Part shown: positions 6,358 through 63,587 of the stretch, in pieces | Layout: each line of letters begins with the position of its first letter | How positions within the stretch are numbered: the stretch's first letter is position 1 | Assembly (NCBI RefSeq): GCF_006345805.1 | Contig: NC_042998.1 | Span: 113,026,001-113,090,000, forward strand | Direction: 5' to 3' | Origin: Octopus sinensis | Taxonomy: Eukaryota | DNA length: 64,000 nt | Notes under the pieces: generated by a model | What the model was told of the DNA's origin: nothing | Seen by the model: only the letters and a program-made list of their open reading frames with translations | Databases searched by the model: none | Translations under genes and position numbers: made by a program

Positions 6358-6855
6358 ATTTGTCAAGCGACCAAATATCTCCACGACCAAAACATCACAC
6401 ATCGAGATCTTAAGCTGGAAAATCTTCTCTTAGACCAAAGTAACTCAGTAAAGATTACAGATTTCAGCTTTGCCAAACTTAATCCGAAACACGATCTCAG
6501 TCGAACGTACTGTGGATCGAAATCGTACGCATCTCCAGAAATATTGACTGGAGAACCATATGACCCACATAAAGCTGATGTTTGGGCTATTGGTGCTATA
6601 ATGTACATCATATGTACCGGTAAGATGCCATTTAACGAAAACAGGGGTTTGAAAAAAATCCTTGAAGAACAAAAGAATCTTGTTTTTCCGTGGTTTAGAT
6701 TTCAACTCTCCGAATGTTTTCAAAAGTTAATATGTTGTATATTTACTTATAATTATATCAAGAGACCCTCGATTGAAGTTATACTTGAAAGTGAATGGCT
6801 CAAAGAGAAAAAAAGTTCACTTCAATCTCTGCCTGATAATGAAAAGGATATGTAG
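6358..6855 (+). CDS. TSSK: TSSK-like kinase gene A, terminal exon (exon 3; C-lobe); exons 1-2 lie upstream of the window
   Basis: Acceptor tttctgcag at 6349-6357, then an open frame ICQATKYLHDQNITHRDLKLENLLLD..KITDFSFAK..LSRTYCGSKSYASPE..KADVWAIG..TGKMPF to TAG at 6853-6855 (166 codons). It is in frame with ORF-track 6544..6855 and has the same exon start as genes B and C. Confidence 0.92.
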   Translation: MCQATKYLHDQNITHRDLKLENLLLDQSNSVKITDFSFAKLNPKHDLSRTYCGSKSYASPEILTGEPYDPHKADVWAIGAIMYIICTGKMPFNENRGLKKILEEQKNLVFPWFRFQLSECFQKLICCIFTYNYIKRPSIEVILESEWLKEKKSSLQSLPDNEKDM

Positions 6856-6986
6856 AGCGGAAAGGGGTTACAAATAGCACCTTCTTCCAACTCTCCAAAC
6901 CCCACCCCTAGTATTCCACCTTCGAATTCTGAACGCTCCTTAATTGTTTGGAATTTATCTGTGACCATTTCTTTGTCCCACCCCCT

Positions 6987-7099
6987 CTTCTTCTTCTTCT
7001 TCTTCTTCTTCTTCTTCTTCTTCTTCTTCTTCTTCTTCTTCTTCTTCTTCTTCTTCTTCTTCTTCTTCTTCTTCTTCTTCTTCTTCTTCTTCTTCTTCT
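6987..7099. repeat. (CTT)n, about 37 units, just 3' of the gene A stop
   Basis: Read directly from the sequence; AATAAA follows at 7156. Confidence 0.97.
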
Positions 7100-7224
7100 C
7101 TTTCTACTACTACTACTACCTCAACTAGCTATGTAATGAGATGTTTATTTTTTTAAATAAAAACGAACAAGATCAGAAAACAAATAAAAAATAAATGGTT
7201 TATTATAATAAAATTTATTTATAT

Positions 7225-59500: not shown

Positions 59501-62024
59501 ACTACCCATAAGTTGGGACTGTTCCCATTCGCATTTCTGAGTGTTGGGGACCATGTTCATGATTCTCACTAGGAGCTAGGTGGACATCAGTCGGTCCCGT
59601 ATCCTCATCCAAACATTGCTCGAGAAATAGATCCCGATTCGTGGTTCATTTTCCTCCATACCAAGCATGGAGCCGTTGGACACTGACAGACTGTCACCAA
59701 TGTGACTAAGAAGTCCTATCTACCCCAGTTTTAAAATCAGAGTGTTCCTTCTCCAAGACAGTCAACCAAGGCTCACAGGTTCTGTCTACCCGTCTATGGA
59801 ACGGCCATTTACTCTCCTGAGTTCCTCTACTTTTTGCAGGATTTTGATTTTAATCCCACAATGTTCCAAACTTCACTCTCCTCACCTAGCAAGCTTAGTG
59901 GGGTTTTCGGCTTCGTCGCCGACGGCTTGACCACGTGACGGTTGCACAACTCCACTGCTTAGTCCACGATCTGAAGATATTTTCCTCGTACTAATCTCAG
60001 AGGCCCTGCTGCCCTTCATCTGACAAAGACATACAAAAAGATTTGAACTAAAATTTTTAAATGATCACCGAATTCATACATAGTAAAGGTTGGAAAACTA
60101 TAGTATTTCAAAATTCACTATAAGTGTATGTGTACAAACACACATACGCACGCACACACTCACATATGTACACATACACACACATATATATGTGTGTGTG
60201 TGTGTTTATATACATATATGTATATGTATATATACATGTGCACGTGTATATATATGCATGTGTACATGTGTGTATATACACAGGCACAGACACACACACA
60301 TATATATATACATACACGCACGCACATACACACACACACACACACACACACACACACATATATATATATATATATATATATATATATATATATATATATA
60401 TATATATATATATATATAACATACTTTTTGAAAAGTTACCTTGAAGAGACGCACCTTCACCTACGATGAATGACAATTGTTTGTACACCATCTCACCTAT
60501 CCGTTGCATGATGGGTCGAAACGATCGTGGTGGCTCTGAATGAAGAGTCTCGTAAATTCCATTTTCTTTCTCTCACATTTTATATAAACTTTACGGACAC
60601 AAAGGAATTCTTGAAATAAATCCAGCAACTTATACCTCTATACTGTTGTTGACATCAAGTAGTAGAATACTCTAAACAGCATACTACAAGGTGTATGTGC
60701 TTGTGTATGTGTGTGTGTAAGTTTGTGTGTGAGTGTGTGAGTGCGTGCGCATGTGTTATTAATAATAAGCAAGTAGGCTCGTGGACAACAATGACCCTAC
60801 AAATATGTATTTCTATACATTTATTACGTTTAACTGCTCATAACTGAAACATGTACAAAGGCGTATTTAAAAAATGCCGAAGAACACTTTATATGTTCCT
60901 ACTATGTAATAATACTTGAATATTTAGATCATGAGAAAATATAGAGCATAATCTCGTTAAATTCATGTTGCAAGTGCTTCACATAAAAAGAAGAGAAAAC
61001 AGGGCAGAGAAATAGATGGATGGATAGGTGTCGACATTACAACACAATGATAATTAACTTCTTTCAACTAAGTATTCTCATAGTATTACAAAAAGACAAG
61101 TGGAAAGAGCTGAGAGCACATCTCGCAGAACAAATTGGCAAAGCACCGTGTGGAGTCTGATTTAACTCTGACGAGGGACCCACATCGCCAGTTTATATAG
61201 CCCTGAACAAAACTTTCTGGAACATTCGAATTGTAAATTGGTGGTAAGCTTACATAGCTCACTTTTGATGATTGCCTCCGTTAGCCGATACATGCCAGTC
61301 ATTTTTATTTAGTTATTTTCCTTCCAAATTTATATTAACTAATTAGTATTGATAGAAACAGGCTTGACTGCGTGAAATAATAGTCCCTAAAATTAAATCC
61401 GGTTCAAGAAAGACAAGCAACAATCCATTTCCTAATTCTGATAAATCAAAAGGAACCAATCAATAGAATTTCTAGAGCTTTGTGTTTTGTTTTAGAGTAG
61501 TTCTTCAAATAATCACTTAATTAAAAATTGATTCGAGCAAGAATTAATACAGGTAAGGAATACCATGTATTACGTACGTTACAAAAATACATTTATTATA
61601 AACACTGAGACTAGAAACATGAAAGGCATCATCTTCAATTAGACATCAACGTATATGTTTCATAATGTTTGAGCAGCATACTCTCAATGTGAATTGTTTA
61701 GAAACAACCTCAAGCAGATAATTTATTTGAACTATATCTATAAGTGGGAAATATAAATGAGAAACATTTACAAATAGTCGACAACGGTGTATAGGATTTT
61801 GGTCAATTGGTTGATTAAGTGTACATTTAATAATTTTGGTTCCAAAGGAAGAAAACAGAAAACATTTCTTCTGTATTTTGTTTCGTCTTTTCAAGTAAAG
61901 CATGATGGTGTTGATGTTTCTCTGATTTATTGCTGAACTGAAAGTATGGTGAACCAGCAGGAATATCATAGTAACATATTACTCAACTGACTGATTGATT
62001 GATTGATTGATTGATTGATTGATT

Positions 62025-62215
62025 GAAGGTGACGAGCTAGCAGAATGCTTAGCAGTATTTCGTCCTTCTTTATGTTCTACGTGCAAATTCCTCTGAGGTC
62101 GACTTTCCCTTTCATCCTTTCAGTATCAATGAAATAAATATCACTTAAGCACTTGGGCCGATGTAATTGACTTGTTCCATCCCACAAAGTTTCAGGTCTT
62201 ATGCCAATAGTAGAA
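62025..62215 (+). mobile_element. Degenerate SINE family A monomer
   Basis: ggtgacgagctagcagaatgcttagc..gaggtcgactttccctttcatcc. Confidence 0.7.
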
Positions 62216-63412
62216 AAGAAAAAATAAGATGATTATTCATCTGATTGAGCTACCGTTTCTTTCTCAATAAAGGAAATAGTCCAATACATCCTCAGTTTTT
62301 GTAAGTGCAATCAATGATTTAATCACTACTATCATTCAAACAAACATACATAGAAGTACCGAAACGTGGTTAGAGGATAACGGGAATATAAGAATATAAC
62401 TAGTATGCCTATTCATTTTAAGTTGTAATTTGTGAACAATACCGCAGTAGCTTACAGGTTTCCATCAGCCCAATCGTTGGTCCATTGTATTTCTGACAGT
62501 GAGAGTAATAAGGGGGTGTGTTTAACTTGGGTTAACACAAGGAATTTCGTACTTAAAGCAAGGTTTTTTTTTTCTCGCTAGTGTTTATGACCTTTACTAA
62601 TATAGAGCGAAAAATTTACAACTCTGTGTGCGCGCAAACACTTGAGTATATATGTACGTGTTGTCGTTTGTATATAAGTGTATTTGTGTGTGTATTTATA
62701 TATTTATGCGACGGACTTCTGCACAGATTCTATCTTTCAAATTCTACATTCCATAAGGTGATAGCCAACTTAATGATTAGATAGACAACACTTGCTTAAG
62801 GTGCCACTCGGAACGACGTCATTGTGAAGCGAACTTCTGAAACATGCTATCATGTCATTTGTCTGTTATATTTGGAAATTCCTTTAAATATATTGATGAG
62901 ACATTCAAGAAACTGTTTCAAAGAATTCCAAGAGTGTGAAAAACGATATTGAACAAAAAAAAAAGGCGTCAATTTTGAATAATCCAAAAATGTAATATGA
63001 AGTTACCTGTTTAATAATTTTGTTTTCTTTGAATCAAACTATTATTTCCTAGTTTTGCGCCGTCATTTCTTCAAAATACAGAAAACCATCAACAACATCA
63101 TCATCATCATCATCATCAACAACATCACCATCATCTCCATTATCATCAAAATCATTATCATCACAAACAAATTAATATTATATGCTCTGTCTTTCAACCT
63201 CTAAACAATATGAGCCTTAAAGATGCGTTTCTATTTTTTTTACGAGAGCTCCAAATTGTGTTAAAATATTACGTGTTTTTGGTCTGATTTGTAACGCAGC
63301 CGTTCTCGATATTTTCAACAAACGCTTTACTTGTGAAAGTCTTCAAATTATTTTGATTTAAAGCTGATGCCCTAACCGCTTCAGATATGTATTCGTTCTA
63401 AATATCTTTCCC

Positions 63413-63587
63413 ATGATTGGTGGCATTAGGAATCGGGCTTCCATGAAGAAGCATCAAAAACATCAACCCAAGCATGTTGACCCGATGAAAACCGATTCAA
63501 AACGGAAAGAAAGAGAAAGACATTACTGTTGTGTAAGCAACAGAGAAGTACTGTCAAAACGTGATTATGTGGTGTTGAAAACTCTAG
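63413..63587 (+). CDS. TSSK: TSSK-like kinase gene D, exon 1; remaining exons lie beyond the window
   Basis: The ORF ends in EVLSKRDYVVLKTL+G with a G|GTAAGC donor at 63588 (phase 1), homologous to gene C exon 1 (LLKRDYIVTRSLG). Start is 63413 or 63443. Confidence 0.78.

Follow-up and report, generated by a model that had tools for sequence, protein, structure and literature searches.

A 112-kb tandem cluster of four predicted TSSK-family kinase genes in Octopus sinensis, with probable intron gain and a likely role in sperm biology

The window analyzed here, a 64,000-nucleotide (nt) stretch of Octopus sinensis DNA, matches chromosome CM016860.1 of assembly GCA_006345805.1 at positions 113,026,001 to 113,090,000 with 100% identity, window base 1 being chromosome position 113,026,001. 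It carries the central part of a tandem array of predicted TSSK-family protein kinase genes, which we call A, B, C, and D. All four lie on the + strand; B and C are complete in the window, whereas A is represented by its last exon and D by its first. Kinase-coding segments were located in the window on the + strand only, both by a motif scan and by tblastn with kinase pieces, in line with the four same-strand genes described in an initial annotation of this DNA. The surrounding sequence is AT-rich (34-42% GC), with abundant microsatellites and transposon remnants. Two loci fetched around the window were merged with it to give 132 kb that was scanned as a whole, and exons outside the window are given below in window-equivalent coordinates, with negative values for positions upstream. 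A slash marks a splice junction.

Window-equivalent -32599 to -32404, + strand: gene A (XP_029652408.2, named TSSK3-like, 331 amino acids), exon 1, 32.6 kb upstream of the window
Window-equivalent -18603 to -18302, + strand: gene A exon 2, 302 nt, 18.6 kb upstream of the window
6358 to 6855, + strand: gene A exon 3 including the stop codon, acceptor ttctgcag/ATTTGT, coding for ICQATKYLH...HRDLKLEN...DFS...SPE to the C terminus
22784 to 22865, + strand: gene B exon 1, 82 nt, coding for MYNMEMLHGVDYHQILAKRGIKLLDTI plus the first base of the Gly codon, donor CGATTG/gtaaga
29277 to 29578, + strand: gene B exon 2, 302 nt, coding for the Gly loop, the VAVK lysine, the FLPRELE α-C helix, and the hinge
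33684 to 34160, + strand: gene B exon 3 including the stop codon, coding for the catalytic loop HRDLKLEN, DFG, APE, and the C-lobe
40140 to 40323, + strand: gene C exon 1, 184 nt, 61 codons plus the first base of the Gly codon, donor CCCTCG/gtaagt
48581 to 48882, + strand: gene C exon 2, 302 nt
51941 to 52399, + strand: gene C exon 3 including the stop codon
63413 to 63587, + strand: gene D (XP_036354873.1, named TSSK4-like, 354 amino acids), exon 1, 175 nt, donor CTCTAG/gtaagc
Window-equivalent 67003 to 67304, + strand: gene D exon 2, 302 nt, 3 kb downstream of the window
Window-equivalent 79084 to 79671, + strand: gene D exon 3, 15 kb downstream of the window

The genes follow one another head to tail in the order A-B-C-D over 112 kb, and they form a cluster of adjacent same-strand, monophyletic paralogs with common intron positions. 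Base-by-base reading showed canonical GT...AG boundaries and a polypyrimidine tract at every junction. In each gene intron 1, in phase 1, interrupts the GxGxxS loop within its first Gly codon, while intron 2 is in phase 0 and lies directly 5' of (I/L/V)CxxxxYLH; three exons with the same phases and a 302-nt exon 2 were found in 8/8 O. sinensis and Argonauta genes. An in-frame stop codon directly precedes the ATG of B (TAG) and of C (TAA), and exon 1 of B is 82 nt long in Argonauta too. The exon 3 product of A, which follows an intron 2 of 24.7 kb, is 100% identical to residues 166-331 of the RefSeq protein (P0121), and the exon 1 product of D is identical to an O. sinensis protein. The identical three-exon plan proposed in the initial annotation was reproduced, also in the exons of A and D that lie outside the window, and its 302-nt exon 2, reported for the two complete genes, extends to A, D, and all four Argonauta orthologs. 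The intron phases given there (phase 1 in the Gly-loop codon, phase 0 before xC...KYLH) were confirmed, and the B and C coding sequences, described as open, gave 286 and 314 amino acids on manual splicing. Its hand counts of identity (51/101 residues between exons 2 of B and C, 80 of the first 111 residues between exons 3 of A and C) were exact on recounting, and its end coordinate, 63587, is the exact last base of D exon 1.

A profile hidden Markov model built from 12 octopod proteins was run against all six-frame open reading frames (ORFs) of the merged 132 kb. It matched 12 exons, which make up the four genes, with E values from 1e-9 to 1e-91, and detected no extra copy or pseudo-exon in the 132 kb, every other ORF scoring E > 0.4. 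No fifth copy was found within 10 kb beyond either end of the cluster, leaving a kinase-free margin of 10 kb on each side. Each annotated octopod proteome contributed four proteins to this clade among the matches listed. The "at least 4" paralogs of the initial annotation are thus most probably exactly four, over 112 kb; its claim that the cluster runs past both window edges is right, because genes A and D themselves do, and fails for any further copies within the 10 kb on each side. One apparent irregularity, D exon 2 seeming to run into exon-3-like sequence, was a spurious BLAST extension through stop codons. No Rfam or tRNA match was obtained for RNA genes in the window.

All four genes are already in RefSeq, A and D under the accessions listed above, B as XP_036354850.1 (286 amino acids) and C as XP_036354848.1 (314 amino acids), with TSSK3-like or TSSK4-like as their names. 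Our manual splices of B and C are identical to these models residue for residue, and therefore the suspicion that the cluster was poorly annotated through missed short first exons is wrong for this assembly, whose RefSeq models contain those exons. Poor annotation does apply to Octopus vulgaris, in which the cluster models P0122, P0126, and P0130 (CAI9717895-97) are faulty: the A model continues, in the wrong frame, into B exon 2, the D model (411 amino acids) has the C-terminal half of C attached to it, and the B model is truncated to 190 amino acids. The RefSeq names given to the four genes are inconsistent and vary between TSSK2-, TSSK3-, TSSK4-, and TSSK6-like. A second RefSeq isoform of B, XP_036354851.1 (P0125), comprises 231 amino acids and starts at a Met within exon 2; it is devoid of the glycine loop and the catalytic lysine and, if real, would be a kinase-dead, N-terminally truncated product.

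The encoded proteins are short (286, 314, 331, and 354 amino acids) and consist of a kinase domain with short N- and C-terminal tails. Pfam Pkinase (PF00069) covers residues 23-276 of 286 in B (E = 1e-62) and residues 55-311 of 314 in C (E = 2e-66), and only kinase-type families were matched. These values, together with the gap in E between the exons and all other ORFs in the 132 kb, exclude a chance resemblance. Across the 12 aligned octopod sequences there is no variation in the glycine loop, the VAVK lysine, the α-C glutamate, HRDLKLEN, or the aspartate of DFx, and every sequence has (A/S)PE. DFG is kept in three copies; copy A has DFS (window 6469-6477, ...ITDFSFAK..., exon 3), and the same is found in O. 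sinensis, Octopus bimaculoides, and Argonauta hians. The motif flanking α-C has diverged in copy D to VPVTYQKHFLSRE. With the kinase residues kept in all copies and DFG in three, the four proteins are most likely active kinases.

Among solved structures the best match is TSSK6 (E = 5e-59, 203 bits), over the whole kinase domain, and SIK3, BRSK2, AMPK, and SNRK score below both TSSK6 and MARK. In the printed alignments a stretch, AP-DF--FLPREL, is common to TSSK6 and the octopus proteins and absent from MARK4. Three large searches returned, among the matches listed, named relatives that were all TSSK-like. These matches, and trees that place the proteins inside the TSSK bracket and away from MARK, support the TSSK identity proposed at the outset, and we take A-D as predicted TSSK-family kinases.

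One quick and two careful maximum likelihood trees (LG+C20 PMSF, MARK2/4 outgroup) were built with MARK2/4, mouse TSSK6, mammalian TSSK1/2, and a coral TSSK-like protein as reference kinases. The A-D proteins of the two Octopus species, O. sinensis and O. bimaculoides, and of Argonauta hians fall into one clade (support 99/99 to 100/99); within it A, B, C, and D each have a 100% group of their own, with all three species in it. The sister of this octopod clade consists of chiton, bivalve, and gastropod genes, about one per species, and follows the species tree. Octopod, other molluscan, nemertean, and annelid genes together make up a lophotrochozoan clade (100/99) whose sister is an ambulacrarian clade. 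Mammalian TSSK1/2 belong to a separate clade from the octopod genes, mouse TSSK6 and the coral TSSK-like protein branch nearer the root, and MARK is set apart by a 100/100 branch of length 1.7; no grouping of the octopod proteins outside TSSK was seen. Copy B has the longest branch, 1.6.

An octopod clade next to a molluscan sister clade of roughly single genes indicates that the cluster expanded in the octopod lineage, before Octopus and Argonauta separated. The initial annotation had proposed lineage-specific duplicates, probably cephalopod; the single octopod clade, with no one-to-one orthologs of the individual copies outside it, noncephalopod molluscs included, upholds that proposal at the octopod level. 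Searches with single proteins and with a profile for squid, cuttlefish, and Nautilus orthologs gave no named decapodiform or nautiloid sequence among the matches listed, and in the tree of the retrieved relatives no unnamed sequence fell within or beside the octopod clade. A profile of the ambulacrarian orthologs yielded mammalian TSSK1/2 and no vertebrate TSSK3 among the matches listed. The sole link to vertebrate TSSK3 is a published neighbor-joining tree that groups scallop Tssk3 with vertebrate Tssk3 (PMC8042308), our scallop sequence P0032 being presumed to be the same gene.

One-to-one orthologs of A-D exist in both O. bimaculoides and Argonauta hians. Between Octopus and Argonauta the ratio of nonsynonymous to synonymous substitution rates (dN/dS) is 0.13-0.15 for A, 0.09-0.12 for B, 0.07-0.10 for C, and 0.23-0.25 for D, at dS values of 0.65-1.1. 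Between paralogs dS is saturated and protein identity is 47-54%. A-D are old duplicates kept under purifying selection, in agreement with the old, maintained duplicates of the initial annotation. Scaffold BAAFZT010000040.1 of Argonauta (25.77-25.82 Mb) carries A, B, and C in tandem, with order and strand as in O. sinensis. The introns of Argonauta are far shorter than those of O. sinensis, C intron 2, for example, measuring 128 bp versus 3,058 bp. Within intron 1 of Argonauta gene A, the final ∼32 codons of the gene's own exon 3, LICCMFTYNYLNRPSIETV..KEKSSSL*, recur in nearly identical form (L009, ∼12003-12098).

Outside the cephalopods the orthologous gene has another structure. In the four loci inspected it is a single uninterrupted ORF that belongs to a gene pair:

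L005, 557 to 6095 (pair): Tssk3-like ortholog of a chiton (Liolophura), uninterrupted ORF of 1095 bp
L010, 1 to 4053 (pair): Tssk3-like ortholog of an oyster (Ostrea edulis), uninterrupted ORF of 1053 bp
L011, 672 to 4074 (pair): Tssk3-like ortholog of an annelid (Owenia), uninterrupted ORF of 1074 bp
L003, 5363 to 11065 (pair): Tssk3-like ortholog at a fourth animal locus, uninterrupted ORF of 1065 bp

Tssk3 of the scallop Argopecten irradians is likewise reported as single-copy and intronless (PMC8042308). At 4/4 of the inspected loci the intronless gene stands head to head with a multi-exon kinase on the opposite strand, with 185-584 bp between the two start codons in the three annotated genomes (oyster, annelid, and chiton). 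In our trees the neighbors from oyster and annelid fall in the TSSK1/2-like clade, and the consecutive Pomacea locus tags C0Q70_14477 and C0Q70_14478, which stand for both kinds of gene, suggest that a gastropod has this pair as well. The arrangement seems to be a bidirectional gene pair, previously unremarked, that is deeply conserved among lophotrochozoans, and its members presumably share a bidirectional promoter in annelids and molluscs. In octopus the old pairing seems to have been lost, since no kinase was found within 10 kb upstream of gene A.

The introns of the TSSK1/2-like neighbors lie elsewhere (near residue 94, at HR/D, and near residue 213), and the intronless genes carry proto-splice-like sequence at the sites of the octopod introns, such as CTAG/GA and CAG/GT. 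Independent retrocopies would not hit the same site, so that the intronless state would be ancestral for annelids and molluscs at that locus. By parsimony, set against parallel loss, the octopod ancestor probably gained two introns before the gene duplicated; all copies would share both introns because duplication came after the gain. The event would fall at some point after the cephalopods had separated from the other molluscs sampled and before Octopus and Argonauta diverged. A fuller scenario, to which we would give about even odds, is that an intronless paired gene was remodeled at the base of the octopods or cephalopods: released from its pair, it would have acquired two de novo introns at proto-splice sites and been quadruplicated in tandem, with one copy fixing the change from DFG to DFS.

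TSSKs are post-meiotic testis kinases required for mammalian spermiogenesis (PMC7401350), and a molluscan member of the family, that of the scallop, is testis expressed (PMC8042308). In a gonad transcriptome (RNA-seq) study of O. sinensis that used the same assembly, testis versus ovary values, in fragments per kilobase per million (FPKM), were 395 versus 0.02 for a Tssk3-like gene, 89.7 versus 0.01 for a Tssk6-like gene, and 5.4 versus 0 for a Tssk1-like gene (PMC11202624). By their names, at least two of these essentially male-only genes may belong to the cluster. From TSSK homology and the published male-gonad expression we infer that A-D most likely have a part in sperm function or in the differentiation of spermatids, and the joint proposition that they are active kinases working in spermatid or sperm biology appears considerably more probable than its opposite. 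The Logan members of the B and C sequence clusters (P0124 and P0129), considered as possible transcripts, turned out to be single-exon genomic ORFs and not spliced cDNAs.

Several known systems offer a comparison. The closest is molluscan, or more widely lophotrochozoan, Tssk3 (Argopecten irradians and the TSSK3-like genes of Liolophura, Ostrea, and Pomacea), which constitutes the sister clade, has 48-58% identity to the octopod genes, and likewise encodes a kinase domain with short tails. It differs in being single-copy, intronless, and head to head with a TSSK1/2-like gene, whereas the octopod genes have two introns and stand in four tandem copies. Mammalian TSSK1 and TSSK2 resemble the octopod genes as tandem duplicates of the TSSK family within one lineage; they are testis specific, needed for spermiogenesis, intronless, and proposed to be retrogenes (PMC7401350). 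In our trees, however, they belong to another subclade, which also includes the invertebrate head-to-head neighbor genes, and the octopus copies are intron bearing and much more diverged from one another (47-54% identity). Mammalian TSSK6 provides the best-scoring solved structure (PDB 8iyj and 8otz, which we take to be structures of the sperm axoneme doublet microtubule) and has the AP-DF--FLPREL stretch in common with the octopus proteins; yet at ∼40-45% identity, on a long separate branch and intronless, it is not their ortholog.

Our reading of these data, to which we assign a probability of about 85%, is that A-D form a four-gene, 112-kb TSSK cluster that arose by octopod intron gain and tandem duplication, is under purifying selection, and likely encodes active kinases with a role in spermatids or sperm. 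A-D are co-orthologs of one gene, which chiton, oyster, and annelid carry as a single intronless copy (as does scallop, according to the paper cited above). In the octopod lineage this gene would most probably have gained two spliceosomal introns at proto-splice-like sites, after which three tandem duplications would have taken place before Octopus and Argonauta diverged. Purifying selection has since held all four copies.

A number of observations weigh against this reading. The PDB score of MARK4 (6e-57, 196 bits) is close behind that of TSSK6; NUAK, SIK, AMPK, and HUNK were ranked by PDB scores only and are not in the trees, and neither are vertebrate TSSK3/4/5. The branch of mouse TSSK6 is long and placed close to the root, and the octopod clade is sister to the chiton and other molluscs together and not nested among the conchiferans, a placement that may be a long-branch distortion. 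The trees give no clear branching order among A-D or sequence of the three duplications. Argonauta D is on another scaffold (BAAFZT010000005.1), through either a translocation or an assembly difference. The DFS of copy A and the FLSRE of copy D are variants that could alter activity. The expression table of the gonad study (PMC11202624) uses EVM... gene identifiers, with no primers or coordinates, and its entries are not linkable to A-D.

A rather unlikely alternative is that both introns are ancestral and octopods keep the old structure, the intronless genes of chiton, bivalves, and annelid having arisen by intron loss or retrocopy replacement. Mammalian TSSK genes are prone to retroposition, TSSK1/2 being the proposed retrogenes (PMC7401350), and our comparison takes in gene structures from four noncephalopod taxa plus one from a paper, with the cephalopods represented by Octopoda alone. 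Such a history has to accommodate the same head-to-head setting of the intronless gene in the annelid, the chiton, the oyster, and the fourth animal locus, the different intron positions of the TSSK1/2-like relatives, and the proto-splice-like CTAG/GA and CAG/GT at the homologous sites, all of which favor gain in the octopod lineage. A very improbable one holds that A-D are other CAMK-like kinases (MARK, NUAK, SIK, or BRSK) with nonreproductive functions, the TSSK names being artifacts of automated annotation. It can draw on the nearness of the TSSK6 and MARK4 scores (203 versus 196 bits), on the inconsistent RefSeq names, and on the use of MARK as the sole outgroup, and MARK/Par-1 (CAMKL) kinases do have a similar CAMK-like catalytic core. 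MARK/Par-1 proteins, though, have UBA and KA1 domains and are far longer, whereas the 286- to 354-residue octopus proteins have neither these domains nor the long regulatory tails of MARK, SIK, or NUAK, Pfam finding the kinase domain only. The FLPREL-type motif is common to TSSK6 and the octopus proteins and missing from MARK; SIK3, BRSK2, AMPK, and SNRK score lower than MARK; the 100/100 branch parts MARK from mouse TSSK6, mammalian TSSK1/2, and the octopus clade alike, and the scallop ortholog has been classed as a testis-expressed Tssk3 (PMC8042308).

That at least one copy is nonfunctional or catalytically dead, as a pseudogene or pseudokinase and not an active sperm kinase, is unlikely. 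The DFS of A, the diverged VPVTYQKHFLSRE of D with the highest dN/dS of the four, and the longest branch of B would each fit such a fate. Against it, the coding sequences are open and the splice sites intact for all copies in both O. sinensis and Argonauta, the invariant Lys and Glu, the Asp and Asn of HRDLKLEN, and the Asp of DF(G/S) are kept, and dN/dS is well below 1 for every copy. DFS in A is conserved in three species and is therefore a maintained state and not decay.

Transposon remnants occupy parts of the introns and spacers at 13612-15490 (- strand), 23822-24469 (+ strand), 8288-9651 (- strand), 53928-56070 (+ strand), and 4369-4668 (- strand). The spacer from A to B contains a hAT dimerization domain (Pfam E = 3e-6), and intron 1 of B a zf-RVT fragment; by eye, several ORFs resemble reverse-transcriptase or mariner fragments, with no Pfam match. 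Long perfect microsatellites in introns and spacers include (TA)114 at 3496-3723, (ATAG)29 at 30650-30764, and (ATAT)53 at 40552-40764, and a (TCT)38 tract at 6986-7099, 130 bp past the stop codon of gene A, is probably in its 3' untranslated region.

As such, the cluster changes little, the genes being already in RefSeq and the kinase family well known, and interest in it is modest and for specialists. The base-exact models of the four paralogs can be used for repairing the chimeric Octopus vulgaris models. The interest lies in the probable double intron gain, in the apparent loss of an ancient bidirectional TSSK pairing, and in the conserved DFS of copy A. The octopod expansion to four copies of a presumed sperm-kinase gene, found once per genome elsewhere in Lophotrochozoa, is a candidate case of reproductive-protein diversification, in animals with spermatophores and sperm storage. 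If true, the proposed remodeling would be a dated, clean case of metazoan intron gain, tied to cephalopod genome reorganization and to the diversification of sperm kinases.

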